A DNA stretch of 64,000 nt, taken from assembly GCA_950097015.1 (NCBI GenBank), contig CATNEN010000025.1, positions 6,696,001-6,760,000 of the forward strand, written 5' to 3'. This document shows, piece by piece, positions 42,801-64,000 of this stretch. This stretch comes from Macrostomum hystrix (taxonomy: Eukaryota > Animalia > Platyhelminthes). Numbering within the stretch: the first letter of the stretch is position 1; each line of letters opens with the position of its first letter. The notes below the pieces were generated by a model. It saw only the letters and a list, made by a program, of their open reading frames with translations, was not told where the DNA came from and made no database searches. The translations under genes were made by a program, and so were the position numbers.

Positions 42801-45800
42801 ATCTCTTTCTTGTCTCCCAACTCATCTCTCTCTTCTCTCCCAACTCACCTCATCTCTTTCTTGTCTCCCAACTCATCTCTCTCTTGTCTCCCAACTCATC
42901 TCTCTCTTGTCTCCCAACTCATCTCTCTCTTGTCTCCCAACTCATCTCTCTCTTGTCTCCCAACTCATCTCTCTCTTGTCTCCCAACTCATCTCTCTCTT
43001 CTCTCCCAACTCATCTCTCTCTTGTCTCTCACGTTATCTCTCTCTTCATTCCCATCTTATCTCTCTCTTCATTCCCATCTTATCTCTCTCTTCATTCCCA
43101 TCTTATCTCTCTCTTCATTCCCATCTTATCTCTCTCTTCATTCCCATCTCATCTCTCTCTTCATTCCCATCTTATCTCTCTCTTCATTCCCATCTCATCT
43201 CTCTCTTCATTCCCATCTTATCTCTCTCTTCATTCCCATCTTATCTCTCTCTTCATTCCCATCTTATCTCTCTCTTCATTCCCATCTTATCTCTCTCTTC
43301 ATTCCCATCTTATCTCTCTCTTCATTCCCATCTCATCTCTCTCTTCATTCCCATCTTATCTCTCTCTTCATTCCCATCTTATCTCTCTCTTCATTCCCAT
43401 CTTATCTCTCTCTTCATTCCCATCTTATCTCTCTCTTCATTCCCATCTTATCTCTCTCTTCATTCCCATCTCATCTCTCTCTTCATTCCCATCTTATCCC
43501 TCTCTTCATTCCCATCTTATCTCTCTCTTCATTCCCACCTTATCTCTCAATCCAACTCGTCACCTTAAATTAGTATTTTCTGCCTGCTTTAATTTCAATG
43601 CCAGGTCTCTAATCGCGCCTCCATCTTATCTAAGTTATTTTGCGCTCCAATTTAAAAACAGAACAATCATGCTTATTAAGCCGCTATCCTGCCATTGTGT
43701 TCAGCTGCGCGCACGGCAGTGTTTTTCTGCTATTTCCTAAAGTACCGCATTCAACAGGCCTCGAGAAGGAAAAGGCTTCCCAGGGTTCTGTGGACTGTCT
43801 CTCTCCCTGAAACATTCGCCCTAAAAACAATCCTATATTGCTCAAACGCGAACAGCATCCCCCAATTTCATTTTCAGATAGTCCGTCTCGTATTTTCCCG
43901 GCCTGCCAACCAGAAAAAAAGCTGCCATAAAAAATAAACAGCTGAAAATTCCCTTAGAGACGAAATCCCGCCACCAACCGGTGTTTTTTAGATGGGCAAA
44001 TTATTAACAAATTTGAAATGATTTCCGTTTTAATTATGCTGCTGCTAATCTGAAACTCGATTAACGACTCGCCAATCGACCATTGGCAATCCAGATGAGG
44101 CGTCACTTCTGGAGGCTGGACTCTCGGGGACTGACTCTCTACCCCGACGAAGCCACTAATCGATATTACAAGGTGAGAAATCGTACACACATTGTTTCAT
44201 ATTAATTATGGAGTTGAAATTCAATGCGTTTTTTTTTAAAACCAACGATTTTTACGATGTATTAGGATGTTTTTTAAAAGATGTCGATATACTGTCTACC
44301 CGATTGCTTCCCAATTTTGACACTGGAATTTGTCATATCTCATAGCCGCTCTATATAACTTGTCTTATAACTTGTATATAACTTGACACCCGGCAAATCA
44401 CCCATGCCACTATCTGGCGTGTCTGAGCACAGCTGAGCTGTGCTTTAAAAATGATTGATCGACTTGAGTCTATATGCTCAGTCTGTATTTATGGCCGCAT
44501 TAACTCCAGAAATCGCTTGTATATATACTCGTACTAGCTTTTTTTGCCCGTTGTTTTTGGGGCAGAAATTTAAAGCAAAGCAGTAAACAATTCACGTCTC
44601 TGTATTAACTTTATAGTGAAGGTCACCATTTATTTATTTACTGCATTAATGAAAAGTGAAGAGTTTGTTTAAGGGCGTTTTAAGTAAAAAAAAGTGAAAA
44701 GTTTGTCCAAACAGCCCCCTCTTGATTACTTCTTTAGAAACATGTCTCTTAGCCACTCCTCTATACAGTCAGTGGCAGATCCAGGAATTTTGTTTTGGGG
44801 CGGTCTGTCAGGGGAGCGCCATGAGAATCACAGAGGGGGTGCCAGCGGCCGAAAAAGGGCGCCAGGAGCCAAGAAAGGGCGCCAGCGGCTGAAAAACGGG
44901 AGCCAGCGGCTGAAAAAGGGGCGCCAGCGGCCGAAAAGGGGCGCCAGTGCTGCGACTGGCGCCCCTGGTGGGGGCATCTTATTCCCATGATTAAAATTTG
45001 GGGGGGGCGACTGCCCCACGCCCCCCCCCCCTAAATCTGCCTCTGTATACAGTATGCATGTACACGCGTATACATAAGGAAAATAGCCATGGCATAACAA
45101 TAACAATGTCAAAGAAACAAAATTAAACTGTTTCAGAGTTCAGAGTTAGACAGGTCAAGGTCAATTCGTGACTACTTTTCTATTAATTGCTTGCGAGTCA
45201 CCTCAAGGCCTGGGGATACACCACATTCTTCGTTCTTCCCCTTGGTGCGAAAATGAATAGGCCAGCTGGAGTTCCAACACGGGAGCAGGCAACATAAAGC
45301 TGCCCATGCGAGAAGCAAGGAGTCTCCAGGTTGATGCCAGCCACCTTCAGCGACTGTCCCTGAGCCTTGTTAATAGTCATCGCAAAGCACACTCTCACAG
45401 GGAACTGCAGTCGCTTGAACTGAAATGGCAGGTCCGTGGGGATAATTGGAATCCGGGAACGAACACAGACTCTCCTCTGCCAGATCCAGTCATTATCGTG
45501 GCCTCAATCACGTGTGGGAAGAGCCGCCTGACTATCAGTCTGGTGCCGTTACACAGCCTTGGCGCATTCAGGTTGCGGAGGAGCATAATTGGTGCCCCAA
45601 CTTTCAGCTGCAAGTTGTGCGATGGAGTTCCAGGAGGATCTAGAGAGTTCAGAAACTCAACAGGATACTCCACAGCGGTGTCATCAGTCAACGTTGTATC
45701 AATTGACTTGTAGGTGAAAACTGCACCTGGCAACTCCTGAAGCAGTTGGTAGTTAATTTCGTTGGCGGCATCATTTCTAGGACACAGAATTGCCCTCTCT

Positions 45801-48800
45801 GACAGCCAGTCAACGCCAGCCTCTCTTTCTTCTATCCCAGGCTGGCTGGAGAGAAATATCGACCGGAGAGCCCTGCGCACTGGGACGCCACCGCACTCAC
45901 CGCACTCAGTCTCAGTGCTGCTTGGGGGCCAGTAGACAGTCTAGGGGTTTGGGCTGTGTACATTCACGGCTTGAAATACAATGTACAGTCTGGGGCTTCG
46001 GCGCCCGGGGAAGGGAGGGGGTGGCTGTAATAAAATTTGGCCCGCAGAGTGGCGGAGGGGAGTTGGGGTGGCTGTCCTCGGAAAACAAAAAGTGACTCAC
46101 TTTGAGATGATGCAGCTTTGCTCTGGATTGAGTAGAGATGTTCAAAATTGACAGCATTGTTGGAAAACATGTAAAGTGTAAGTGGATCAAATTTGGAGAA
46201 AATCTGACAAAGTGGGGCGACGATATGTCGAATTGAGTGATTTTTTGACGATTTTTGAGCAGTTTTTTGCACTTTTGAGCAGGAAGGAAATGATTTTTCG
46301 GGAATTTGAGTAGCCTATTGCACTCAGCGTAGGTGGTTTTAGGTATGTGCAAAGTTTGGTGCGATTTGGTTGAGCGGTTTCGGCGTCTATAAAGACAAAA
46401 GGTTGCACACAGACAGACAGACAGACAGACAGAGTTTTCACTTTTATATATATAGATATATAGAAATACGCGCCCAAAAATCTATGCATTAATATTATCA
46501 GCTGTGTAACCTGCTCTTTACACAAGCAATTTGACAAGTGCAATTTGCCAAACGCTTAGGTTTGGACATAGTGGAGGCAATATATTAATCGAGGGTTGGA
46601 CTAAATGCTAGGGCTACAGAGGGCGTACGAGATGGGATAAATGGAAGACGGCTCGGAGCACGGCAGAAGTACACAGCTCCAGCTGGTGGGTATCTTCTTT
46701 ACCCAATCACCCTATGCAATGCCCCAGCGTGTTGCTGCCAGGCGCCCACCCCACTCCCCAAGGGTCGCGGCAGTTGTTAGGGTGGGGAACTAAAACTTTA
46801 CTCATCCAAGCACAGTGACTGCAGCATATGGGTTAGGCGACAAACACTTCCTAGGATAGGCTTTTTCTGCAACCCAATGCCCCCCCCCCAACACGCATGA
46901 GGGAGTTTGTTAGTCACACATTCTTCTGTGACTGGCTTTTGTCCCATTGCTTCAAATGTCGAAGCTCCGCCAGAAATTAGACTTATGCCTAAAATTTCAG
47001 CAGCCCCTCAAAGTGTTACTCAAAAGTACACTTTCGCCGCCTGAATTGACAATTTATCCCCCTTTTTTTCTTGCCTAAGGGCTCCCAAAACGAAATTATC
47101 CCTTGGGAGAATTTTCGATTCGCTGCTTCAGTCGACTAAGCGTCAAGCTTCGTCAGCCATACGAAATGAGTTTCCGGGTTTCAAAAATGAGCTTTTGAAA
47201 GTGTAATTTACTTGTTTCCTGTGACCCCTGTCTCATCCACCCTGTTCCATGCGTTCAGACGCCTTTTAATTCTGTCTAGCCCCAGATTATTCAATGATGA
47301 TGATCCAACCCGAAGTATCATAAGACCAAGCCTCGATTTATCGACACCACTTCTCTAACCCCAGATATACATTGAATAAGACAGAGCCTCAATTTATCGA
47401 CACCGTTTCTCTAACCCCAGATATACATTGAATAAGAAAGAGCCTCAATTTGTCGACTCCGCTTCTCTAACCCCAGATGTACATTGAATAAGACAGAGCC
47501 TCAATTTATCGACAGCGCTTCTCTAACCCCAGATGTAGATTGAATAAGACAGAGCCTCAATTTATCGACAGCGCTTCTCTAACCCCAGATGTAGATTGAA
47601 TAAGACAGAGCCTCAATTTATCGACAGCGCTTCTCTAACCCCAGATGTAGATTGAATAAGACAGAGCCTCAATTTATCGACAGCGCTTCTCTAACCCCAG
47701 ATGTAGATTGAATAAGACAGAGCCTCAATTTGTCGACAGCGCTTCTCTAACCCCAGATGTAGATTGAATAAGACAGAGCCTCAATTTATCGACAGCGCTT
47801 CTCTAACCCCAGATGTAGATTGAATAAGACAGAGCCTCAATTTATCGACACCGCTTCTCTAACCCCAGATATACGAGTACATTGAATAAGAAAGAGCCTC
47901 AATTTGTCGACTCCGCTTCTCTAACCCCAGATATACATTGAATAAGACAGAGCCTCAATTTATCGACAGCGCTTCTCTAACCCTAGATGTAGATTGAATA
48001 AGACAGAGCCTCAATTTATCGACACCGCTTCTCTAACCCCAGATATACGAGTACATTGAATAAGACAGAGCCTCAATTTGTCGACTCCGCTTCTCTAACC
48101 CCAGATATACGAGTACATTGAATAAGACAGAGCCTCAATTTATCGACATCGCTTCTCTAAAACAAATTGCCGATTCATATTCTGACATTTGTAACAATTT
48201 TTTAGAATCATAAATTACGCATTAGCTTTTAATTAAAAATGACAGTAAACTATCGTAAAGAACTTCGGTTTAATAATTCCCTTTGAAAGTTATGATGAAG
48301 GAATTTAAAGACGGAATTCGAATCGGCCATGCTGGAAAAGAAAATTTTCGAAAATGAAGAAACATCTTGGGAAGAAAAGCAGCCGAAGCCGACAGTGGGC
48401 TTGAATGAAAACGTCCTGCCGGCTGAAGCTTTATTAATCAATATTTTATACACGCAGGCCCCAGCCAAAGCTGAGAAAAACTTTGGGACTGTAGGCATGC
48501 AGGAAAAAAGAAAAGGGAAGAAATTGTAAAAAGTCGGGCTGCTCGCGCGAAGGGGCACTTGAGCAGCGAACGCCGAAGCCGGCCAAAATATGAGTACTTA
48601 TAACCAACTCCTTCACTCAAAAAATCTAACTGAAAACTTTGCAACATCAACATCGATAGTTTTCCTATCGCGCCTCTAAATTGCATAGTACTCACAAGGC
48701 ATCAGAAAGTCCATTTCGACCATTCTCAGAATTCTATGCTTAAGCAAGCCATTGAGACTTCTGCACTCTTAAAGAAGTTTAAGTTAGGCTTTTTTCATAA

Positions 48801-51800
48801 ACTATATCATCAGCAGTACAGTTCACTACAAAAGTACATTTCACACTACCCAGGAGATCCTACTAACTGAAATTGTCAGCGTCGCTAGCTGCAGCACCCA
48901 GACTGTCAAGGACTATGTGTTTGCGCTCAAGACCAGCTCCGGCACAACCTACTTCATCGGTGGCGGTGGTGCCGGAGGCGGCGGTGGCGGCGCAGGCGGG
49001 CACGATCGGCCGGCCATCCCGACTGACCTCCTGCAGCTATCGCGCCAGCAGGCGGTGCACTTTGAGGCCGCAGTCCGCGCCGCCCTGCTACCTGTGTCCG
49101 CGAGCCGAGGCAGCGGTGGCGGTGGCGGCAGCGGCGGCGGCGGGCCAGGAGAAACATCCCAGCCAGCAGCTTCGAGCGCTCAGTCAGGCACCGTCTCCGC
49201 AGCCTCCAGCTCGTCGTCGTCTGTTGGGGGCGCCGGCGCCAGCAGCGGCGACGGCAGCGCCGGTGGCGGCGTCGTCGTCGAGACGCTGGAGTCGCAGTTC
49301 GACATACATCATGAGGAGATCCTGGGCAGCGGCCAATTCGGCACAGTCTATGCCGGAGTTTGCCGCGCCAACGGACAGGAGGTGGCCATCAAGGTCATTG
49401 ATAAGCTGCGGTTTCCTACCAAGCAGGAAACGCAGCTAAAGAATGAGGTATCAGTCTGTGTTAAATCTCTTACGACGCGATCATCAGCGAATTATAAAAG
49501 TTTTTTTTATTTCAAATGCTCTTCCCCAGGTGAGCATCCTGCAGTCGCTAAACCACGAAGGTGTAGTGAAGCTGCACAAAATGTTTGAAACTCCGCGCAC
49601 CCTGTTCGTCGTAATGGAGAAGATGGCTGGCGACATGCTGGAGATGATTTTGTCTGGCGCCGATGGCCGACTCTCAGAGCGGGTTACCAAGTACCTCGTG
49701 GCGCAGATCCTGTGCGCACTACGCTATCTGCACACCCGCTGCGTTGTGCACTGCGATCTCAAGCCTGAGAATGTACTTTTAGCACCTGCCGCTGGCCACG
49801 GCAGCCTGCACTATCCGCAGATCAAACTGTGCGACTTCGGCTTTGCCCGAATCATCGGAGAAAAAAGTTTTCGAAAAAGCATTGTGGGAACGCCGGCGTA
49901 TCTAGGTGAGTTTTTATCCTTGCATTTGGTGGTCATTCGATGGATAGCATGAATGTACATTGTCCCAGCCAGCTAGCCCTACTTTCTCGCAGACTGTTCT
50001 AGCCTGAATGTACATTGTCCCAGCCAGCTAGCCCTACTTTCTCGCAGACTGTTCTAGCCTGAATGTACATTGTCCCAGCCAGCTAGTCCTACTTTCTCGC
50101 AGACTGTTCTAGCCTGAATGTACATTGTCCCAGCCAGCTAGTCCTACTTTCTCGCAGACTGTTCTAGCCTGAATGTACATTGTCCCAGCCAGCTAGTCCT
50201 ACTTTCTCGCAGACTGTCCTATCGCTACAGTCGTTTGTACTTCAGTCTTCTGAAATAGAAGTGTCATCCTGAGTCGGTTTAACCGCCTTACAGCGTATAA
50301 ATTATTCACAAACCCGCCTGTTGCAAAGAAAAACTGTCAAAAATGTTAGATTTTTTCAGAATTCGTCAAATTTGGATTTCTGCTTACTGACTGTTGAATT
50401 GTCAATGCAGTTTTTTTCAACTCGTTAAACTTTTGAAAAATTCAAATCGATGTCTATCTTCTAGCCTTGGAGAAAATACTTGTTGTGCGAAGAGAAATTC
50501 GGGGCAGATGTACACACCAGTGTGTGTGTGTATGTGCCAGCGCAGGTATCCGTGTTGTGTGCTCAGGTGTCAGTGATTGAATGGTCAAAATCTCGCTGGC
50601 TGCAGGTCGACTGTTTGCAAATGATGTGTTTCTGCCCGCATGGAAAATATTACTAAACAAATTATTATCCTTTTTAGATATAGAAACTATACTATTGAGC
50701 CTTGCAATCTACGGGCTTAACCGTCCCGACTCGACCCCAGATGCGCAGGGATAATGAAATCGCATTGATCTCCCAATCGATTCCAGCTCCCGAGGTCCTA
50801 AAGTACAAGGGCTACAACCGCAGCATCGACATGTGGAGCGTGGGCGTGATCACCTACGTGAGGTGAGGCGTCGTTGGTATTGAGCAGTGCCGCAATTGGC
50901 AGCTGGCGTGCAGCCTAAGATTATTAGCTCATTGGATGGCTTATTATGGCCCTAGTAGATGATTATGCAGTGGATCGCTGAGATACGGATTTCAGACCAG
51001 TCGATCCAAGTCAAATAGTTTCGATGCAGTACAAATCTAATAATTATCTGATTTTTTCCTCTGACAAAATATCAATTCTGCTAAAAGCAATGGTTTCGAT
51101 TGAGCTGGTCAACTGGTTAGCATCTTGCAATGCAGGTTCGGAGTTCGATTCCTCGACTAGACAGTTTTGAGAACATTTTATTATTCTTGTACAAGGCATC
51201 AATTCAACCAGTGGTACTCGTACCAGTATTAAAAACAAAATAATAATTGCAGGAGGACTCTGGGAAATGGCGCATTATATGGTGACACTGGACCCGCAGC
51301 CAGCGACGAGGCAATTCTGTCCATTTCGCTGACTCCTGAGCACAAACTCGCACAGGTGTGTACATCTGCCCTGACTTTCTCATCGTCAGGCAGTGTACAC
51401 TTTCACTGATGTGCCTTGGAGGTTGGCCCCAATTTAATGTGGCCTCGCCGCGGAATCGAACTCAGGGACCTTGGCGCGAGAGGCAAACGTGTTAACCGCT
51501 CTGCCACTCACCCCCTCACGTACCAGTATTAGCTGGGGCAGAAATTTGGGTAGATGCGCGGCCCTCGAACCCCAGTCCACGGACTGAACACTACACGCTG
51601 CCCCCACCTACAATAACCCGCCATGCAGCCTAAGCGGCACCTTCCCATTCAACGAGGACGAAGACATTGCCGACCAGATCAAGAATGCGTCCTTCATGTA
51701 CCCGCCGGTGCCCTGGGAGACCATCTCAGTCGAGGGTGAGTTTCTTAGAAAGCTTAAAAAAATTATTGAAGACTGGCCTTCAAAAAAGGCGACGAATTTC

Positions 51801-54800
51801 CGTATTTTCTGCTTTCCGGTTTTTAGTCGAGAATTGGTTTACTTACTTTGACTTTCTTCTTTGGAGCCGTTTCTGTTTTGCATTTTTCTGGCTTCGCTTC
51901 TCTCAGAAGCCGGAAAATGCTCCTTGGAAACAAACACACCGCACACATGCCGCTTTCGCGTTCGCTCAAACCTGACACTCGAAGTTATTAGTCACCTTAT
52001 AGCCACAGCGGCTAAGGGCTATCAATTTCCAATCCTTTCTCGCTTGGCATTAATTAATTATTCAGTAGGCCGTAGCCAAGCCAAGGTGCCTGTTTGTGGG
52101 CTCCGCAGCGAGAAGAAGCACTGTGTTTTTTTACAACGGGCCCGCCTTCACCGCTACTACGAGTCTCCAATCTCGACAGCGTGGGATAAGGTGCAGAACT
52201 CACTGCAGACAGATTTAAATGACTAATTCTTCTGCAGTCTGATTTACTTTACTCGTAGTTTCTACGAGCTAAAAGCAGTGAACTGGAAGGATTCAATCGT
52301 GTTTCCAGTTTGCTTCAATGAGTTCAACAGAAGGGAGTTATGGTGCCTACTTTATCGCGTGCACTTTCTTCTACCTTATAGGCGCCTTCTAAAAGATGTT
52401 CAGTATTATTTTCAGGCAAAAAATGTTCATCCGATAGTTTGTCTATGATTGCCAGGAATGAAAAAAATACTTCTTTCGCACCTGGATCAGAGTCAGACAA
52501 ACTTGGACACAGCAGGTTGGAAATATAGTGGGGTAGAAAGGAATGAAGGACAGAATTTTGAACAAAAAATAGTGGAGTAGGAGAGGGAGTGAGGTAGATT
52601 GGTAGAAAGAGAGATTGATTGGAAACAGCTGGGGTGGATTGTGAAAGAATGGGGTATATTGACAGAGAGTGGGGTAGATTGTGAGAGAGTGGGGTAGACT
52701 GAAAGAGAGTGGGGTATATTGACAGAGAGTGGGGTAGATTGTGAGAGAGTGGGGTAGACTGAAAGAGAGTGGGGTATATTGACAGAGAGTGGGGTAGATT
52801 GTGAGAGAGTGGGGTATATTGACAGAGAGTGGGGTAGATTGTGAAAGAGTGGGGTAGATTGTGAGAGAGTGGGGTAGACTGAAAGAGAGTGGGGTAGATT
52901 GCGAGAGAGTGGAGTAGATTGTAAAAGAGTGGGGTAGATTGTGAGAGAGTGGAGTAGATTGTAAAAGAGTGGGGTAGATTGTGAGAGAGTGGAGTAGATT
53001 GTAAAAGAGTGGGGTAGATTGTGAGAGAGTGGAGTAGATTGTAAAAGAGTGGGGTAGATTGTAAAAGAGTGGGATTGATTGGGAGAGAGTGGAGTATATT
53101 GTAAAAGAGTGGGATTGATTGGGAGAGAGTGGAGTATATTGTAAAAGAGTGGGATTGATTGGGAGAGAGTGGAGTATATTGTAAAAGAGTGGGATTGATT
53201 GGGAGAGAGTGGAGTATATTGTAAAAGAGTGGGATTGATTGGGAGAGAGTGGAGTATATTGTAAAAGAGTGGGGTAGATTGTGACAGAGTGGGGTAGATT
53301 GTGAAAGATTAGCGTATATTGACAGAGAGTGGGGTAGATTACGATAGAGTGGGGTAGATTGGGATAAAGTGGGGTAGATTCACAGAGAGTGGGGAAGATT
53401 GGGAAAGAGTGGGGTAGATTGGTAGTAGGGTGGGGTAGTCCATGTAGGGAGTAGGTACAAGACTTTAAGCTCTCCGTATGTGGCCAGTTAGGCAGGAATT
53501 GCAGCGCGATCCCATTGTCCGAAACTGTCCACTTGCAGCCACCGACCTCATTGACCACCTAATGGACTTGTCAATCAAAGATCGTTACACAGTGGCTATG
53601 GCGTGGTGCCACAAGTGGATAAAAGAGGTTTCACATTTGCTTAGCTGTCAGAAAAATTATTACATTTTTGTCTCTTATTTAATTTTCAGTAGCAATTGAA
53701 TGTTAAAAAACTATCAGTGTCGCATTTAACCTTTGACGCTTTTCCTCTGGATCTAATAATTGTTTTCAACTGTAATTATTCGCCTGAAATTGTTCTTGTC
53801 CATCATTTTATTATAGAAAATTTGTCTGTATTATTCCTGACTTGACTAAATTAGGAATTTTGTGGAAAAATTTCACCGAGAATTCCAGGCTCACGAAAAT
53901 CCTAACTCACCGAAATCCCGATTGACCGAAATCCAAAAATGCACCCAAATCCGAATTCCCCAAAATAACAACTCACTGAAATCCCAATTCACTGAAATCC
54001 CAATTCACCGAAATCCCAATTGACCGAAATCCAAAAATTCACCCAAATCCAAATTCCCCAAAATAACAACTCACTGAAATCCCAATTCATCAAAATTCCA
54101 ATTCACCAAAATCCCAATTCACCAAAATCCCAATTCACCAAAATCCCAATTCACCAAAATCCCAATTCACCAAAATCCCAATTCACCAAAATCCCAATTC
54201 ACCAAAATAACAACTCACTGAAATCCCAATTCACCAAAATTCCAATTCACCCAATTCCTGGTTCCCCAAAAAACAACGCACTGAAATACCGATTCCCTAA
54301 ATATCAATTCCAAAAAATCCCAATTCCTAAAAATCCCGATTCCCGAAAATCCCAAATTCACAGAAATCCCAATTCACATTTTTCAAATGGCAGATTATTT
54401 CACAGAAATCCCAATTCACCAAAATCCCAATTCACCTAAATCCCAATTCACCAAAATCCCGAGATTATTTACAGTACGGCAGATTATTGCTTTAAATAAC
54501 GAGCTTAGAAGCCAATCACTCCTCTTCAGTACGAGTCCTTTTTTCTATCAAGTTCCACATGAATATGAAAAAACTATGTTAATCTCAATCTTTTGATAAT
54601 TTTGAAGTTTTTTTAATCTTTCTGGTGCTGCCTCCTGACTATCTTTCTGATTTACAATTCACTCTTTGTGTGCGTGTGTACTAGCCATTGTGCAATTGTA
54701 AAAACTCTTAATGGCAGAGCAATGAGAGATTAATTAATTGGTGTTGTTGGCACCTTGTAGTCGTGAAATATGTATATTTGTTTGTGCGCATTTGTACAGC

Positions 54801-56681
54801 ATTCTCAAATATCGATCGGTTTTCATTCTCTTAATTGCAGCGATCGACTTAATTAACCAGCTGCTGCAGGTAAAGCTGCGGCACAGGCTGTCAGCTGATA
54901 AGACCCTCATGCACGTCTGGCTGCAGGTAAATTGTTCAGGGGCAGCAGAAGCAGCAGCAGCAGCAGCAGCAGCAACATTGCCCATTATAGTCCCGTCTAA
55001 TGTTTGGGCTTAAAATATTTGTGTTATTTTTTTACAATTAGACTTCGCGCTTGTCCAGAACTAATCCAGTTACATGCATAATAGCAGCTGGTGCCATTAT
55101 TGGTGTAGATTAATTGAAATCTCGAGATCAAAACAACACGTACAGGGTAGGTCTAGTAACTAAGGCTGAATTAGCTATGCCAAATCCCAATTCACCAAAA
55201 TCCCAATCATAGAACTAGTCATAACAAACAGAGGAGGTGGTAATGAACCAGTCATAGCACACAGAGGAGGGGGTAATGAACCAGTCATAGCACGCAGAGG
55301 AGGGGGTAATGAACCAGTCATAACACGCATAGGAGGGGGTAATTAACCAGTCATGCACGCAGAGGAGGGGTAATGAACCAGTCATAGCACACAGAGGAGG
55401 GGGTAATGAACCAGTCATAGCACACAGAGGAGGGGTAATGAACCAGTCATAGCACACAGAGGAGGGGGTAATGAACCAGTCATAGCACGCAGAGGAGGGG
55501 TAATGAACCAGTCATAGCACACAGAGGAGGGGGTAATGAACCAGTCATAACAAACAGAGGAGGGGGTAATTAACCAGTCATAACAAACAGAGGAGGGGGT
55601 AATGAACCAGTCATAGCACGCAGAGGAGGGGGTAATGAACCAGTCATAACAAACAGAGGAGGGGGTAATGACCCAGTGACAAAGATGGCAGTGATTATGC
55701 AGATAGAAGTGATATCCATCTAGATTGTAGCTGATTCAAATTCGCCAAAGTCAAAGCTATTAGAGAATATAAGCTTTAAAGATAAAGCCAACTGAACAAT
55801 GGCGTGTTGTACCAGAAACATTTTAGACACCCGCAGGTCCAGATTGTATTAGGTTTTCTAACACCTTTTTGCAACTGCATGCAAGTATATTTACAGATAT
55901 ACCTAGCTCCTTAGTTACATATTAGTTATTTATTGAGTTATTTACCTGGAATGATTTGCATGTTCATTTTAGAGGTGTCGTCGTTCCAAATACATTCACG
56001 TCTACTTATATTTCTCAGTAGTATGTTAGATAGAAGTTATTTTAACTTTCTGGTTCGCGGAAAATTTTCTGATGTCACTTAAGGTGTCAATTAAGGTGGC
56101 TTTTTTGAATTTGAAATAACGAATTTGAAAAGTGAAAATCTAGACGGGCTTATAATTATTCAGTACTTGATTAGATATTATACCAACAGGCGCAAAGTGA
56201 GATATATGCAGCTGTTTTCTCACGTCACGCAATACTTTTAACTATTTTTAGAGTCTACTAAGTTCAAATTAGCGCGAAAATGAAATTTTGCCGAACGGCG
56301 GTTATAACAAACTAACTGTACTAAATGCAACGTAAACAAAAAGGACTAAACTTTGTTGAAATTGTTTGAAAAGAACAATCCAAGCAGAGGAAAAGTATTG
56401 GCGCGAATTTAAATGTAAGCAGTTCAACAAAAATGCCGTCAATAAAGCAGTCAGCTGACACCCGACTCGCCCCTCGACACCGCGCCCAGGACTACGCCTG
56501 CTGGTGCGATCTGCGCAAGCTGGAGCTTCGCTGCGGCGGCAGTCGCTACCTGACGGACGAATCAGACGACGAGCGCTGGGAGTCGCTGCGCCGCCGTCGC
56601 GGCCTGGCCGAATGGGAGAAATACGGCTGGAATTCCGAACTGGCGTCTCCGATATACTACTCGGCCGACGGAGAGAAGTAG
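752..56681 (+). CDS. PRKD: Serine/threonine protein kinase D (PKD/PKC-mu family), spliced: join(752..809,2064..2204,3949..4290,4373..4459,10860..11019,11111..11234,44095..44172,48854..49447,49530..49905,50787..50862,51629..51735,54841..54926,56490..56681); 806 aa
   Basis: All introns are GT-AG, phases match at every junction, and the total of 2,421 nt is a multiple of 3. The protein has two C1 zinc fingers, the PKD motif [10 protein letters not shown], a PH domain, a kinase with HCDLKPEN / [27 protein letters not shown] / [11 protein letters not shown], and the C-terminal TDESDDERW motif. Confidence 0.93.
1000..1220. repeat. 36-nt minisatellite (GAGGGGTGGGTGCAACTTTATGGCCAAAGAATTGGA)
   Basis: About 6 copies; degenerate copies resume at ~1674-1930 after the foldback element. 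Confidence 0.9.
1222..1668. mobile_element. Foldback/MITE-like element with modular inverted ends
   Basis: Left end CCTGGACACTTCGTCATCTTACAACTTCGTCATC; rc of right end CCTAGACACTTCGTCATCTTACAACTTCGTCATC. Further internal GATGACGAA modules. It splits a 36-nt minisatellite. No TSD found. Confidence 0.65.
1674..1930. repeat. Degenerate continuation of the 36-39-nt GGGTGGGTGCAAC minisatellite
   Basis: Same core motif, more diverged. Confidence 0.75.
2064..2204 (+). CDS. PRKD: PKD exon 2, first half of C1a ([32 protein letters not shown])
   Basis: Acceptor CTAATTTGCAG, donor GTGAGT, C1 Cys/His spacing. Too short for the ORF track. Confidence 0.93.
3180..3920. repeat. 33-nt tandem array (CGGTCATTCAAGTAGCTTGGCTCATTGTCCCAT)
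   Basis: About 22 near-identical copies ending ~28 nt before the exon 3 acceptor. Confidence 0.97.
3949..4290 (+). CDS. PRKD: PKD exon 3: end of C1a, Gln-rich linker, first half of C1b
   Basis: CGLNFHKRC...GRPLWL...[20 protein letters not shown]; flanked by CAG and GTCAG. Confidence 0.95.
4373..4459 (+). CDS. PRKD: PKD exon 4, end of C1b ([18 protein letters not shown])
   Basis: Acceptor TTTTATTCAG, donor GTGAG, phase 1 to phase 1. Confidence 0.93.
4660..5065. repeat. ~35-nt minisatellite (GGGTGCAACCCTGAGCCACAGAAATGGAGGA)
   Basis: About 11 copies; same GGGTGGGTGCAA core as the intron 1 array. Confidence 0.9.
5654..9092. repeat. 23-nt purine-rich satellite (AGACAGATGAAATGAGAGCAATT)
   Basis: About 150 copies with higher-order structure. 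Confidence 0.98.
9673..10219. repeat. 8-nt tandem array (TGAGTTCG/TGAGTTCA)
   Basis: About 65 copies. Confidence 0.95.
10565..10832. repeat. 24-nt minisatellite (TGGGAGAAAATGGAACTGAGTCGA)
   Basis: About 11 copies ending just before the exon 5 acceptor. Confidence 0.95.
10860..11019 (+). CDS. PRKD: PKD exon 5, acidic and Gly/Ser-rich linker ([16 protein letters not shown])
   Basis: CAG acceptor and GTGAG donor; phase 1 in and phase 2 out fits both neighbours; acidic stretch expected between C1b and PH. Confidence 0.8.
11111..11234 (+). CDS. PRKD: PKD exon 6, start of PH ([18 protein letters not shown]...[10 protein letters not shown])
   Basis: Acceptor TTTTTTTCAG, PKD signature motif, donor GAG|GTACC. 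Confidence 0.92.
11940..43548. repeat. Giant 23-nt polypyrimidine satellite (CTCCCAACTCATCTCTCTCTTGT and variants), ~31.6 kb, ~1,370 monomers, inside PKD intron 6
   Basis: Continuous array of monomer variants (CCAACTC/CTCATCT/CTCACCT/CATTCCCATCT). It ends in a homogeneous CATTCCCATCTTATCTCTCTCTT block at ~43030-43540. Confidence 0.99.
44095..44172 (+). CDS. PRKD: PKD exon 7, PH domain ([26 protein letters not shown])
   Basis: 78 nt, phase 0 to 0, CCAG acceptor and GTGAG donor. Matches the PKD RKRHYWRLDSK...RYYK segment. It is the first exon after the satellite intron. Confidence 0.93.
44770..45045. mobile_element. hAT-superfamily MITE (276 bp) nested in the Helitron
   Basis: Imperfect TIRs CAGTGGCAGATCCAGG and rc CAGAGGCAGATTTAGG; exact 8-bp TSD TATACAGT at 44762-44769 and 45046-45053; internal ~21-nt GC-rich repeats. 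Confidence 0.85.
45198..45880 (-). pseudogene. Helitron RepHel PIF1-helicase C-terminal fragment, frameshifted
   Basis: [29 protein letters not shown] and [21 protein letters not shown]...[15 protein letters not shown] 1-nt loss near 45453-45457 splits V-P-R-I-P-I-I-P between two frames. Confidence 0.9.
47320..48160. repeat. 56-nt tandem array (TTCTCTAACCCCAGATGTAGATTGAATAAGACAGAGCCTCAATTTATCGACAGCGC)
   Basis: About 15 copies. Confidence 0.95.
48854..49447 (+). CDS. PRKD: PKD exon 8: end of PH with poly-Gly inserts, kinase N-lobe ([25 protein letters not shown])
   Basis: CAG|GAG ATC acceptor; 594 nt, phase 0 to 0. Confidence 0.93.
49530..49905 (+). CDS. PRKD: PKD exon 9, catalytic core and activation loop
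   Basis: [11 protein letters not shown] and [13 protein letters not shown]; CCCCAG acceptor and GTGAGT donor. Confidence 0.96.
49951..50218. repeat. 55-nt tandem array
   Basis: About 5 near-identical copies starting GAATGTACATTGTCCCAGCC at 49951, 50006, 50061, 50116 and 50171. Confidence 0.95.
50787..50862 (+). CDS. PRKD: PKD exon 10 ([26 protein letters not shown])
   Basis: Kinase subdomains VIII-IX; TTCCAG acceptor and GTGAG donor. Confidence 0.95.
51101..51157 (+). mobile_element. tRNA-like SINE head, probably of an older element interrupted by the 51232-51518 SINE
   Basis: A box TGGTCAACTGG and B box GAGTTCGATTCC; no complete cloverleaf. Confidence 0.5.
51232..51518 (-). mobile_element. 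tRNA-derived SINE (287 bp) with 13-bp TSD
   Basis: On -, A box TGGCAGAGCGG and B box GAGTTCGATTCC with an AT-rich tail. The direct repeat CGTACCAGTATTA lies at 51219-51231 and 51519-51531. Confidence 0.8.
51629..51735 (+). CDS. PRKD: PKD exon 11 ([35 protein letters not shown])
   Basis: PKD-specific subdomain X motif; TGCAG acceptor and GTGAGT donor. Confidence 0.95.
52570..53445. repeat. 20-nt purine-rich array (GAGAGTGGGGTAGATTGTGA)
   Basis: About 43 copies, ending ~90 nt before exon 12a. Confidence 0.95.
53539..53627 (+). CDS. PRKD: Candidate alternative, mutually exclusive PKD exon 12a ([30 protein letters not shown])
   Basis: Acceptor CCACTTGCAG in the same phase as exon 12b. The peptide aligns without gaps to 12b. 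The donor GAG|GTTTCA is weak. Confidence 0.6.
53885..54460. repeat. 16-nt array (TCCCAATTCACCAAAA)
   Basis: Degenerate tandem copies between exons 12a and 12b; a short copy recurs at ~55183-55207. Confidence 0.9.
54841..54926 (+). CDS. PRKD: PKD exon 12b, subdomain XI ([29 protein letters not shown])
   Basis: Canonical PKD sequence; TTAATTGCAG acceptor and GTAAAT donor. Confidence 0.93.
54943..54976. repeat. (CAG)n microsatellite
   Basis: About 10 units just downstream of the exon 12b donor. Confidence 0.9.
55215..55680. repeat. 33-nt array (ATGAACCAGTCATAGCACACAGAGGAGGGGGTA)
   Basis: About 14 copies. Confidence 0.95.
56490..56681 (+). CDS. PRKD: PKD terminal coding exon ([12 protein letters not shown]...[12 protein letters not shown]...SADGEK*)
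   Basis: CCCAG acceptor, conserved post-kinase motif, TAG stop. Confidence 0.92.
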   Translation, partial: DYACWCDLRKLELRCGGSRYLTDESDDERWESLRRRRGLAEWEKYGWNSELASPIYYSADGEK

Positions 56682-59415: not shown

Positions 59416-59501
59416 AGCAAATAAAACGGCTAGAAATCGATCAGGAAACACGGAAGACGATTAACGGAGCGGGTGGCGCAACTTTAATTGGTTGTACGAG
59501 A

Positions 59502-59903
59502 TCAGCCAATCAGAAACCAGGCGTTGCGGGCCCGCGCGGCGTCACCCCGAGCCAGCCGCTTGGGATCGTTGAGGGCAGCGCCGAGGCGAGCAACGACAGC
59601 GGGCCGGTGTGGCAGCAGCTCTGCGGTAGGCAGGCCGCCAGTCGCCAATCGGCGAAGCAGCCGGGCGGAGGCCCGCCTGGCTTCCAAATCGGCGCGGCCA
59701 GGCTCCAGGCAGGCGAGCAGGCGCGGCAGTAGGTCGCCGAGACAGCGCGGCGCCATGGCACCCAGAGCGGCCTGACGGGAGGCTAGAGTCTCCAGCAGGC
59801 GAAGAATTGGAGCGCGGAGGCTGCCAGCTGAAGCTGCTTCGTCAGCCGGTTGAAGGTGCAGCATCAGGGCCGGAATCAGCTGCGGGATTTCGGAGTTCAG
59901 GAG
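59502..59903 (-). CDS. MMS19: MMS19 terminal coding exon
   Basis: Acceptor GCAATAG, TGA stop at 59504-59502, conserved D-x-KRL-x-R...A...R..WFL motif. Confidence 0.85.
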   Translation of the reverse strand, partial: LLNSEIPQLIPALMLHLQPADEAASAGSLRAPILRLLETLASRQAALGAMAPRCLGDLLPRLLACLEPGRADLEARRASARLLRRLATGGLPTAELLPHRPAVVARLGAALNDPKRLARGDAARARNAWFLIG

Positions 59904-62900
59904 CTATTGCGAAGTACGCAGCTTGGGTATTTGAAATACCAGCGTGGTCTCTCCACTGAACTGAAGCACAAGATGATCCAGTTTCTAAAGGAATTTACGA
60001 TTGATAATTAATGTGCAGCCGATAACTGCGTACGGCTGTTCAGTCCATGGACTGGAAAGACACAAATTTTTCCACTGGAGGTCGGGAATCGAACCCCCGA
60101 CCTTCAAGTTTCGAGTCTGACACACTAACTACTAGGCCAGAACCCCCCCCCCGAGTTACGGTTGAATGCCCGGGTTGATAATGCGAATCAGAAAGCAGCC
60201 AGCTCACGGAGTCGATATAGTCCACAATTAGGTCAGGCGATGCCGACTGTGCCAAACTGATAGCTGCTAACAGACAGGCTTCGTCTGAAAATGTTTTATT
60301 GTGTTGGTAATGAAGAGACATCTTATCTACTGACAGTAGCAATGGGTGCTAAATTCAGACTATTTTCTTAGAACTTAGTTATAATGTGGAAATGACCAGC
60401 TTAGCGCCGGCCACAATAGGTTTAAAAATACTCACTGCGCCTCGCATCGGCTAACAGCGGCTGCAGCAGCAGGCAGAGGCACTTCTGTACGGCTAGCGGG
60501 CCAATGGAGGCTTTGGCCGCCGAGCACAGCACTCGATCGCATGGCGTCAGCAGCAGCTCCAGACGGCTGGCGAGCCGCATTGCCAGGCCCTGACGGTCAC
60601 CGTCAATGTAGCCGCGAAGAATTTTCAGAACTCGTTCGGCTAGTTGTGAGAATAGCGGCGATCCGCTGAGCAGGAGGGCCTTCAAGCACCAGGCTAGGAA
60701 TTCGGAGGCGAGCCGCGGATCGGCTGGGCTGTTGTCGGCGATCACGGAGTCGACATCTGATTGCAGTCGTTGCTCCACCGCCGACATGGCAGGATCTTTT
60801 AAAGCATTTGAATGTCAATAATTTTAGCACAATCGTTTCTACAAAAGTACATGTGCACTTTGCACCGATAAAAAGTGCACATGAACTTAAAAGAACATTT
60901 GCACTTCCACAGTAGAACAACCGCGCCATTTTTCCTGTTGGCGAAAGACCACACGGTGCTTCAAATTCTCACTGCCTACTTAACGATAGCTCCCAAACCG
61001 AATGACCGATGACCGTGATTAAAGTCCGATGAACTAATTTTCAAAGCCCTCCGACGTGGAGAAGGGAGCATCGTCAGAGAATCGTTGAATATCTCGACGA
61101 TGCCGATGTTTTGTGATTCTGGAAGTTGTCACAACGGATAGAGCGGAGAATTTCTGCCCGTGTTCTGGATTTTTATGGCAATTGGTTGAATAGTTTAGGA
61201 GATTAGGTATTTGAAATACCCCGAGTTCTTTTTACTGTTAAAAAGTACGTCTGCGATCGAAAAGTACATTGTCACTTATTAAAAGCACACATTCCGTATT
61301 CCGTAGGCAAAGGCTAATTAAAAAAAACTGACGCATTTTATGAATAGACGAATAACGTAAAACGACTCACCTCGACTATAGTCCAGGCACTTGTTAATCA
61401 GGGAGGCGTATAATTCTAGGCTAAATTTGGCACCGTCAGACAAATAGAGAGCGAATAGGCGCGGAAGAAGGGCAACCGCGTGATATTTAACAGTCTGGAA
61501 GAAGAATTTGGATAACTGTAGATCAAATTGATCAAATCAAACAGATCCATTATTGGCGAATGGTGCTCACCTCTGGTGACAAATTAATTAGCAGAGCGCA
61601 GTGCAGCCAACAAAACTGCTCCCTTGTAAGAGCCTGTTGAACAGTCCAGTCAATAGCCGGTTTGACTCTCGACGATTCGTCACTGGGACAGGCGGGTTAA
61701 ACAAGGAATGAAAATTTTTTTTATTCTATCATCTACAATTCAATTTTAGCCCTATTTTTTTCTGTGTTCTTAACCCAGTAACATATGAATAATAATGTTA
61801 CTATACGTTCCTATTCCTTTAATTCCTCTTGTGCTTTCAAATTCTTCAATCTGACCAGATCTTTTCCAATTCTCCCATCTCATCAGACCACTTCCCATTC
61901 TCCCATCTCATCAGATCTTTTCCAATTCTCCCATCTCATCAGACCACTTCCCATTCTCCCATCTCACCAGATCCTTCTCCATTCTCCCATCTCACCAGAT
62001 CATTTTCCATTCTCCCATCTCACCAGATCCTTCTCCATTCTCCCATCTCACCAGATCCTTCTCCATTCTCCCATCTCACCAGATCCTTCTCCATTCTCCC
62101 ATCTCACCAGATCCTTCTCCATTCTCCCATCTCACCAGATCCTTTCCCATTCTCCCATCTCACCAGATCCTTTCCCATTCTCCCATGTCACCAGATCCTT
62201 TCCCATTCTCCCATGTCACCAGATCACTTCCCATTCTCCCATCTCACCAGATCCATCTCCATTCTCCCATCTCACCAGATCCATCTCCATTCTCCCATCT
62301 CACCAGATCCATCTCCATTCTCCCATCTCACCAGATCCTTCTCCATTCTCCCATCTCATCAGATCTCACCAAAACACATCTTTTTTTATCTTTTTTTCAA
62401 TTCCTTTCCCTTTAAGAGGGCCACAACTACAAGGAGAATATATAAAAGCCTCACTCTATTGATAGATTGCGAGCGAAGGCTTGCACGCAGACAAAAGAGG
62501 CGGCTTTGGTCACATCATTGACGCTGGTTCCAGTGAAAGCTCCAGTGAAGCTTTCAAAATGCCCGGTCCACAGGCCGATGGCAGGAGATCGCGCAGCCTC
62601 CGATGCCATTGCTGTCTCCGTGGCCAGTCTCAGGGCTTCCAGGCGCGGTCTGATCTCTTCGGTTGCTGCTGCAAATGGGTGGTCACTATAGAATTAGTCA
62701 CTCAGAGCAGACTTATGGCTTTTCGATGTCCTTCATCCCACTTCCCACGTGTATTTTATCCCACTTCCCACCAGTAATTTAACACACTTCCCACTTGTGT
62801 TTTATCTAACTTACAACCTGTGTTTTATCCCACTTCCCACCTGTGTTTTATCCCACTTCCCACCTGTAATTTATCCCACTTCCCACCTGTGTTTTATCCC

Positions 62901-64000
62901 ACTTACAACCTGTAATTTATTACACTTCCCACCTGTGTTTTATCCCACTACCCACCAATAATTAATCACACTTCCCACCTGTTTTTTATCCCACTTCCCA
63001 CCTGTCCTTTCTCTTACTTCCCATCTGTCTAATCCTTATCTCCTAATCTGTCCCTTGATCTAGAATCTCACAAAGACATTATCTTTAAGTATTTTTAGCC
63101 AATCATAACCCAAGTCTCACCAGCCCCCGATCCGGCGTCCACGCACAGCCGCATGAGCAGTTGCAGCAGGGCCTCGCTAATAGTAACTGGCAGGTCGCAA
63201 AGTTCGGCTAGCAACAATAGCGACTCAGCTCGCACGTCAGCATCAGCGTGATCTGTGAAATTTTTTATAAATCATACGCAATTTTAGTAGTATAGAAGGA
63301 ACATTTTAACAAAAAATATTTAAGTTAATAAGATACGCACCAGTTGCTAACGGCAAAAATCCCTTAGAAACCAGATTTGCCGCTTCGTTCATTCCGTCAG
63401 GCGTTCCAGTTGCTAGGCGACGAGCAAAATCGCGCACCAACTGTCGGGTCAGCTGACCGGGCAGTCGGCGCAGCCTACTGTGGCCGCCCAGCTCGCCAAG
63501 CAGGTGCTCAACAAAGCCGGCTCGCTGTTCGCAGTTGGCTAGTCCCGGCTCGGCGCACAGTCGGGCCATGCAGGCCAGGCAGCCGACACGCAGCTGATCG
63601 CCGATTGGCTCGGCCGATTCCGCTACAGAATCTGCCAAGCTGTACAGAGCGGCACCGATTGTCTCGAGTTCGCCAGACAGGTGAGCAACTAGAGGCTGTT
63701 GAGTCGAAGATGACTCGGCTGCCGGGTTGACCGACGGCGATGGTGACAGAGAGGCGATCAGCAGACGGCGCAGAATGTCTAACAGGCTACATTTAGTAGC
63801 CGACTGGGGTCAGAGTAAGGCATTCCTTGGTTTAGTAGCTGTTTTTCTCTACTGAAAGCAATGCATAAAAGTACACGAAGGCTTACATCTTTCCTATCCG
63901 CTAGTCCAGCGAGGATGTCCGGCAGAATGCCCGTCAGCAGTTTCAGCCGGATTTCGTAGCCGGCGGATAGGGAGGCCGATTCCAGTGCGCGGCCAGTGGC
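59502..64000 (-). CDS. MMS19: MMS19/MET18-like cytosolic Fe-S assembly HEAT-repeat protein, 3' part: complement(join(59502..59903,59940..59984?,60208..60284,60436..60795,61371..61515,61571..61682,62455..62668,63121..63252,63341..63803,63887..>64000))
   Basis: A phase-consistent GT-AG exon chain. The C-terminus LPTAELLPHRPAVVARLGAALNDPKRLARGDAARARNAWFLIG* matches the MMS19 C-terminal motif recalled as LLPYKPQVIRALAKPLDDKKRLVRKEAVSARGEWFLL. Leu/Ala-rich helical repeats lie upstream. The gene continues beyond the window. Confidence 0.8.
59940..59984 (-). CDS. MMS19: MMS19 candidate 45-nt exon (KLDHLVLQFSGETTL)
   Basis: TTCCTTTAG acceptor and GTATTT donor, phase 0 to 0, followed by a 36-nt intron. 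Confidence 0.5.
60030..60152 (-). mobile_element. tRNA-derived SINE or tRNA pseudogene fragment in an MMS19 intron
   Basis: On -, TGGCCTAGTAG (A box) and GGTTCGATTCCC (B box); arms do not pair well. Confidence 0.55.
60208..60284 (-). CDS. MMS19: MMS19 exon (EACLLAAISLAQSASPDLIVDYIDS)
   Basis: TTTTCAG acceptor and GTGAGC donor; phase 1 to 0. Confidence 0.75.
60436..60795 (-). CDS. MMS19: MMS19 exon (EFLAWCLKALLLSG...IGPLAVQKCL)
   Basis: AAAG acceptor and GTGAGT donor; WxxKALxL motif as in MMS19. Confidence 0.8.
61371..61515 (-). CDS. MMS19: MMS19 exon (LSKFF...LYASLINKCLD)
   Basis: TACAG acceptor and GTGAGT donor; open frame; phase 0 to 1. Confidence 0.75.
61571..61682 (-). CDS. MMS19: MMS19 exon (DESSRVKPAIDW...ALLINLSPE)
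   Basis: CTGTCCCAG acceptor and GTGAGC donor; phase 2 to 0. Confidence 0.7.
61850..62370. repeat. 28-nt array (CTCCCATCTCACCAGATCCTTCTCCATT) in an MMS19 intron
   Basis: About 18 copies. Confidence 0.95.
62455..62668 (-). CDS. MMS19: MMS19 exon (ATEEIRPRLEAL...CVQAFARNLSI)
   Basis: TTTGCAG (NAGNAG) acceptor and GTGAGG donor; phase 1 to 2. Confidence 0.7.
62735..63050. repeat. 23-nt array (TTTTATCCCACTTCCCACCTGTG) in an MMS19 intron
   Basis: About 13 degenerate copies. Confidence 0.85.
63121..63252 (-). CDS. MMS19: MMS19 exon (HADADVRAESLLLLAELC...)
   Basis: TTTCACAG acceptor and GTGAGA donor; HEAT-like; phase 1 to 1. Confidence 0.75.
63341..63803 (-). CDS. MMS19: MMS19 exon (SATKCSLLDILRRLL...GFLPLAT)
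   Basis: CCCCAG acceptor and GTGCGT donor; 154-codon open frame; phase 0 to 1. Confidence 0.75.
63887..64000 (-). CDS. MMS19: MMS19 exon, truncated by the window edge (...IRLKLLTGILPDILAGLADRKD)
   Basis: Open frame ending at donor GTAAGC in phase 0. Confidence 0.65.

Follow-up and report, generated by a model that had tools for sequence, protein, structure and literature searches.

Mutually exclusive kinase exons are a known kind of alternative splicing. In JNK (MAPK8/9/10, exons 6a and 6b) and p38-alpha (MAPK14), homologous C-lobe exons are used in this way and alter docking or substrate preference, not the catalytic core. Protein kinase D (PKD) takes part in secretion, growth and stress signalling as a central effector of diacylglycerol. 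What is known of how it is regulated comes, to our knowledge, almost entirely from vertebrates, in which the kinase domain has one fixed form. In human PKD1, an acidic patch on helix G mediates an autoinhibitory face-to-face dimer of the kinase (10.1101/2022.05.05.490744). Tandem-duplicated, mutually exclusive kinase exons are also found in FYN, in which exons 7A and 7B (FynB/FynT) are ancient and conserved (PMC9741552). Here, we analyse a 64,000-nt stretch of the genome of the flatworm Macrostomum hystrix (assembly GCA_950097015.1, contig CATNEN010000025.1, positions 6,696,001 to 6,760,000; hereafter ‘the window’, with its first nucleotide as position 1), which holds most of one PKD gene on its plus strand. 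We are highly confident that two neighbouring exons of this gene, 12a and 12b, are a true mutually exclusive, tandem-duplicated pair of which each mRNA carries one, and the gene would hence make two PKD proteins that differ solely in 29–30 residues covering helix H, the subdomain-XI Arg and helix I.

The PKD pair is like that of FYN in that neighbouring homologous exons are used singly and the isoforms differ in one homologous stretch that touches the kinase domain. However, the FYN pair encodes the SH2-kinase linker and the start of the ATP-binding N-lobe of a tyrosine kinase, whereas the PKD pair encodes the C-terminal helix H, the Arg and helix I of a Ser/Thr kinase of the CAMK group. JNK and p38-alpha belong to the CMGC group, their exons lie in other subdomains and have been described in vertebrates, whereas the PKD pair was found here in lophotrochozoans only and not in the sampled vertebrate PKD isoforms. 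Relative to canonical PKD (PRKD), 12b is the same segment, while 12a changes several PKD-specific, near-invariant residues. The outcome, one exon of a tandem set per mRNA, is also that of docking-site/selector choice of the Dscam1 type, but no conserved complementary intron elements were found here. Although the kind of pair is known, the PKD case is apparently undescribed, and our literature search found no description of this exon pair or of an alternative helix H-I module.

Exons 12a and 12b in gene and transcripts

The original prediction, made from the sequence alone, placed two exons after exon 11, and their coordinates (Table 1), reading and phases hold up in the sequence. The acceptor of 12a reads ...cacttgcag/CC and its donor, GAG/gtttca, is weak; 12b has the acceptor ...taattgcag/CG and the donor CAG/gtaaat. 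Both exons begin in phase 1 and end in phase 0, each borrowing one G from exon 11, and exon 11 joined through either of them to the last exon gives an open frame that ends at the common stop codon at 56679–56681. At the least, the reading frame enforces exclusivity: with a length of 2 mod 3 for both exons, an mRNA that includes both or neither loses the frame. Joint inclusion, as predicted, breaks the frame, with a stop that lies four codons into 12b and 74 nt ahead of the last junction, and omission of both exons results in a frameshift. Read-through of the 12a donor terminates at the stop codon at 53697–53699, also as predicted.

Transcript evidence was taken from assembled contigs of three public runs (X1–X3) of one study and one organism, which we infer to be RNA, as the contigs cover exons and leave out the introns precisely from GT to AG. 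The joint from exon 11 to 12a (51735/53539) is present in all three runs and that from 12a to the last exon (53627/56490) in X1 and X2 but not in X3, while both 12b joints (51735/54841 and 54926/56490) are present in X1 and in neither X2 nor X3. All four junctions that follow from the predicted exon borders are hence represented. One 1333-nt contig, X2 record 11, runs unbroken through exon 11, 12a and the last exon. In X1, separate contigs of 146 nt (12a, depth 8.8) and 142 nt (12b, depth 5.6) are each flanked by 28–30 nt of common exon sequence, as expected of alternative paths through an assembly graph. No 12a–12b joint is among the joints listed for the contigs of X1–X3. Across the three runs, 12a is no rarer than the canonical 12b. 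A retrocopy as the source of the joints is ruled out by the absence of a second genomic copy: a search of the 220-Mb genome found a single PKD gene, with the 12a and 12b peptides each present in single copy.

The choice between the exons could be made by competition between splice sites, with the weak ‘a’ donor as the regulated step; out-of-frame products would be lost, and nonsense-mediated decay could remove the double-inclusion mRNA. The arrangement is that of exclusion by frame and nonsense-mediated decay: double inclusion or double skipping shifts the frame, with a stop more than ~50 nt before the last junction, and M. lignano is alike. Other known routes to exclusivity found no support. 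Pairing of RNA docking sites with a selector is not supported, given that the inverted repeats are weak and not conserved in place or sequence in M. lignano. This includes a pair at 53789–53809 and 56359–56379 that could loop out 12b but is not conserved in that species. The two Macrostomum species have no conserved intron blocks in common, and no conserved complementary intron elements were found. Steric hindrance would require an intron between the two exons that is too short to be spliced, but this intron measures 1213 nt in M. hystrix, 490 nt in M. lignano and 92 nt in the annelid Capitella. All borders are GT-AG with no U12-like donor, which lends no support to U12-type splice sites.

Conservation, fold and distribution of the pair

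The congener M. lignano has a syntenic locus (L008) with exon 11, 12a (26171–26259), 12b (26750–26835) and the last exon, and each exon type is used in a public protein model. One (UniRef A0A1I8HQD8, here P0270) joins exon 11 to a 12a-type segment and ends there; the other (PAA77718.1, here P0283) is of the 12b type and has the full tail. The M. lignano 12a orthologue is identical in 29/30 residues. Of the 89 bases, 10 differ, nine of them synonymous and one a replacement (Asp to Asn), with a synonymous distance (dS) of 0.92, a replacement distance (dN) of 0.014, a ratio (omega) of 0.015 and a binomial p of 2.5e-6. For 12b the values are similar, with 13/86 bases different, 11 synonymous and two replacement, dS 0.86, dN 0.031, omega 0.036 and a binomial p of 9.8e-6. 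The near-purely synonymous evolution of 12a shows that it is not a dead duplicate. The introns of the two species cannot be aligned, and next to 12a only ~14 nt before the exon and ~4 nt after its donor still align; short flanks of other exons can be aligned as well. The frame logic and the weak donor (GAG/gttt) are conserved in M. lignano, the latter bearing out the caveat that the original prediction had raised. The read-through tail has no such conservation: past the donor, the alignment extends for only 4 nt, and the M. lignano tail is wholly different. As a separate observation, dS is lower in the alternative exons (0.92 and 0.86) than in the constitutive exons 9–11 (1.4–3.6), although the numbers are small; splicing signals within 12a and 12b may be the reason.

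By established kinase anatomy, the exon-12 segment should form helices H and I together with the Arg that pairs with the Glu of APE. On its own, the likeness between 12a and 12b is weak (8/29 residues and 39/86 bases identical, without gaps). Set against a typical PKD subdomain-XI segment, however, 12a reaches scores of up to 78 (BLOSUM62, ungapped); its score against its own 12b is 47. In an alignment of 51 PKD kinase domains, 12a is changed at several near-invariant PKD-specific residues but retains two invariant ones, the subdomain-XI Arg and the His, as well as the Trp of H-x-W, which is near-invariant. The gapless alignment and the retention of these residues despite low identity had been noted beforehand, and both stand. 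Profile and structure searches gave little for either exon. The 12a peptide has no sequence match among solved structures at E up to 10 and alone fails to reach Pfam Pkinase, whereas 12b has weak CAMK and MNK matches among solved structures and a weak Pkinase match to profile positions 237–263 (the last 27) at an E of 0.065, below the cut-off. The open reading frame that contains 12a matches Pkinase weakly at positions 225–263 (E 0.085). A Suv3_C_1 Pfam match of 12a (22.0 bits against a cut-off of 22.5) was taken as chance in a 29-residue query. A PKD protein of 743 aa (P0051) has a 29-residue subdomain-XI segment that is equally like Macrostomum 12a and 12b (scores 72 and 71) and has the pattern L-M-[ED]-x-S-I-x-x-R-Y in common with 12a.

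AlphaFold2 gave the same fold for the M. lignano kinase domain with 12a (model A1) and with 12b (model A2), with a mean pLDDT (predicted local distance difference test) of 83.8 and 83.7, respectively. In both models, helices are placed at residues 235–244 and 255–259, with a pLDDT of 91–97 across the exon-12 part. Given that the underlying alignments consist mostly of b-type sequences, the models indicate compatibility with the fold, not equivalence of the two segments. With the RNA joints, the selection and this compatible fold, the proposal that the pair gives two variants of the C-lobe (alphaH-alphaI) is supported.

We searched the exon peptides against PKD loci of other animals, sampling the relatives through few loci and excluding from all comparisons two primate PKD1 fragments (P0353 and P0357) that came from a cluster listing. 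The layout was compared in five genomes, those of M. hystrix, M. lignano, Capitella teleta, the brachiopod Lingula anatina (L013) and the chiton Liolophura sinensis (L014). Capitella has an unannotated ‘a’ copy between exon 11 and the annotated exon 12 (L012, 24076–24164), and Lingula and Liolophura have the same exon order, a then b. In all five, exon 11 is 107 nt, the ‘a’ exon 89 nt and the ‘b’ exon 86 nt, with AG/GT borders throughout. The ‘a’ donors deviate from the usual consensus after the GT (+3 to +5) in 5/5 genomes. Every ‘a’ exon is extended by one codon at the 3' end, encodes Asp, Asn or Ser at column 12, where every ‘b’ exon has Lys (the first Lys of K-x-R-K-R), and lacks the Asp at column 20 that follows the Arg. 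The 12b type is the ordinary PKD segment and is nearly invariant across animals. RefSeq isoforms of Mytilus, Liolophura sinensis and Lingula anatina, found in clusters of 90% identity, carry either a 30-residue variant or the 29-residue canonical segment.

No ‘a’ exon was found in the genomic loci of Tribolium (L015), the fluke Opisthorchis felineus (L007) and a compact animal from a metagenome (L009). The same holds for the sampled annotated isoforms of spiders, sturgeons, Hydra, Schistosoma and several gastropods and bivalves, although absence from annotation is weak evidence. When the 12a end of P0270 was used in a word-based search of proteins, only P0270 itself was returned, a blank that reflects length and word limits, since ‘a’ isoforms were later found inside the 90% clusters. 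Given the position, length and additional codon that the ‘a’ exons have in common, the simplest reading is that they arose once, before these phyla diverged, and from these sequence comparisons the pair would be far older than the flatworms, most simply explained by one ancient origin. The description of an old, selected exon pair, originally made from the flatworm sequence, was hence an understatement, given that an annelid, a brachiopod and a chiton share sizes and order and a mussel has both isoform types. In the Lingula locus, the exon 11 peptide occurs twice with the same translation, 1.5 kb apart (40041–40148 and 41538–41645), which could be a duplication introduced by the assembly or a further exon duplication in this PKD gene.

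Alternative explanations

Several points weigh against a mutually exclusive pair. The run type of X1–X3 is not on record as RNA and was deduced from spliced contigs. Contigs drop rare variants and cannot prove the absence of 12a–12b or exon-skipped mRNAs, and 12b was detected in one of the three runs only. The structure models depend on an alignment dominated by b-type sequences, and the 30-column tree of the exons neither shows nor rejects a single ‘a’ clade (p-AU, from the approximately unbiased test, 0.35). In addition, X3 record 17 passes from exon 11 into 12a and on for 60 nt into the intron, with the donor unspliced; the weak 12a donor may thus sometimes be unused, or the RNA may still have been unspliced. 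Carried further, 12a could mainly be an alternative last coding exon, with a donor that is often unused and a short intron-encoded tail in place of the conserved C-terminal tail. That this record runs to 53687, in a run without the joint from 12a to the last exon, would fit, as would the weak donor kept in M. lignano and the off-consensus ‘a’ donors of all five genomes. However, the 12a-to-last joint does occur in X1 and X2, once inside the single 1333-nt contig, the tail itself is not conserved in M. lignano, and the X3 contig may be unspliced pre-mRNA. Nor was an AATAAA or ATTAAA hexamer seen by eye in 53628–53700. We consider a main role as a terminal exon very unlikely. A decaying duplicate or ‘poison’ exon, present as splicing noise or as a means of reducing PKD output, has still less to recommend it. 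It would account for the lack of a solved-structure match and of an own Pfam Pkinase match, and for splice signals that are weaker in 12a than in 12b, but it is already contradicted by an exon that alone preserves the frame, has changed by nine synonymous substitutions against one replacement at a near-saturated synonymous distance, and retains the three residues (Arg, His and Trp) that are invariant or nearly so. Furthermore, 12a appears in 3/3 runs compared with 1/3 for 12b, and the equivalent exons are annotated as coding isoforms in Lingula, Liolophura and Mytilus.

A third alternative accepts the pair within each lineage but has exon 12 duplicated independently in flatworms, annelids, molluscs and brachiopods. 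The ‘a’ exons are indeed very unlike between phyla, with ~10/30 residues common to Macrostomum and the chiton, the tree has no ‘a’ group and does not reject Macrostomum a and b together (p-AU 0.33), and tandem exon duplication is recurrent in other genes. Yet independent events would have had to place the variant upstream in 5/5 genomes, at exactly 89 nt with one extra 3' codon next to a canonical exon of exactly 86 nt, and to arrive each time at Asp, Asn or Ser instead of Lys at column 12 and at the loss of the Asp at column 20. Moreover, no ‘a’ exon clusters with the ‘b’ exon of its own species in the tree. Repeated duplication is hence improbable, if less so than the two explanations above, and the mutually exclusive pair, with a single old origin as its simplest history, is the reading that we carry forward.

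The PKD locus and the meaning of the pair

Membership of the gene in the PKD family is supported by exons that match the C1 end, the PH domain and the kinase domain of M. lignano PKD (Table 1). The spliced kinase has 69–72% identity with named PKDs of other animals, molluscs among them, and the closest match of the exon that spans linker and kinase is an M. lignano protein. The 3' untranslated region extends to at least 56896 (X2 record 11).

Table 1 Features of the PKD gene and its surroundings in the window
Feature	Position	Strand	Evidence or remarks
PKD exon, end of C1 domain	~4372–4461 (borders approximate)	+	tblastn with M. lignano P0283 residues 2–31, 90% identity
PKD exon, start of PH domain region	~11106–11237 (borders approximate)	+	tblastn with P0283 residues 87–130, 91% identity
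Satellite array	11953–43700		23-bp unit
PH-domain exon	~44086–44262 (borders approximate)	+	tblastn with P0283 residues 127–188
Pif1-type helicase fragment	45201–45880	−	Pfam Pif1_2B_dom, E = 1.2e-19
Exon with PH-domain end, Gly/Ser-rich linker and start of kinase N-lobe	48854–49447	+	AG/GT borders, open spliced frame; P0283 and P0270 matches
Main kinase exon, from before helix C through catalytic and activation loops	49530–49905	+	AG/GT borders; top library matches are PKDs, ~70–74% identity
Kinase exon, APE motif to helix F	50787–50862	+	AG/GT borders; P0283/P0270 comparison
Repeat in intron before exon 11	51300–51520		
Exon 11, 107 nt, holds helix-G acidic patch, ends in phase 1	51629–51735	+	RNA contigs 51627 to 51734/5; common donor of 12a and 12b
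G-rich minisatellite upstream of 12a	52443–53460		
12a acceptor region	53525–53538	+	blastn block 53525–53631 against M. lignano, 89.7% identity
Exon 12a, 89 nt, 30 codons including shared first base; variant helix H, subdomain-XI Arg, helix I	53539–53627	+	RNA joints; M. lignano orthologue
Read-through tail past 12a donor, stop 53697–53699	53628–53699	+	RNA to 53687 in run X3
Minisatellite downstream of 12a	53860–54470		
Exon 12b, 86 nt, 29 codons; canonical PKD helix H, Arg, helix I	54841–54926	+	RNA joints in X1
Last coding exon, conserved PKD tail after kinase domain, stop 56679–56681	56490–56681	+	AG/GT borders; RNA
MMS19-like gene	59500–63640	−	Pfam MMS19_C, E = 5.8e-9, 60425–60787

The introns of the gene are rich in repeats. 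The intron between the start of the PH domain region and the PH-domain exon is filled by a satellite array of ~31.9 kb with the unit CTCTTGTCTCCCAACTCATCTCT (92% matches in the stretch tested), which is strongly strand-asymmetric, with a GC skew of about -0.88. Another PKD intron holds a Pif1-type helicase fragment on the minus strand, probably a remnant of a Helitron-like element. The repeat in the intron before exon 11 appears by eye to be partly derived from a tRNA, in the manner of a short interspersed element. It attracts hundreds of RNA contigs with summed depths in the thousands and many variant joints, and looks like an abundant transcribed repeat family. Minisatellites lie on either side of 12a: the G-rich one upstream has loose look-alikes in two M. 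lignano introns (L008, 23839–24109 and 27866–28123), and some RNA contigs map to the CACCAAAATCCCAATT-like one downstream. Tail to tail with PKD is an MMS19-like gene; such a neighbour also follows PKD in the M. lignano locus, whereas trematodes have a SAP/AAA_33 gene instead.

The two isoforms would differ in regulation or partner binding through the surface of the C-lobe. Most likely, as a working hypothesis, the variant acts less on catalysis itself than on a nearby surface of the C-lobe or on how the activation segment is anchored; a nearby surface is proposed because the helix-G acidic patch of the dimer lies in the constitutive exon 11. A weak lead is that the Methods of the human PKD1 study list an intermolecular cross-link 622–831, although its main text names 622–668 instead (10.1101/2022.05.05.490744). 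Counted from the numbered residues of that paper, residue 831 would be the Asp that is lost in the ‘a’ exons. More tentatively, and with more doubt than confidence, the ‘a’ exon could have arisen a single time, no later than in the last ancestor shared by flatworms, annelids, molluscs and brachiopods, and have given PKD a second regulatory state by remodelling helices H and I, with the first Lys of K-x-R-K-R and the following Asp lost, and so have altered autoinhibition, dimerisation or partner docking. If this is true, it is a layer of PKD control that is absent from Tribolium and from the sampled vertebrate PKD isoforms, having been lost or never gained there.

The pair also bears on gene annotation: the Capitella gene model is without the ‘a’ isoform, and two M. 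lignano records that appear to be unrelated fragments are isoforms of one gene. M. lignano is amenable to RNA interference and transgenesis. Two versions of helices H and I, around the Arg that anchors the activation segment, have been kept for apparently hundreds of millions of years in several phyla. This long retention of both points to a function for a little-studied surface of PKD and makes the pair a natural experiment on the PKD C-lobe.

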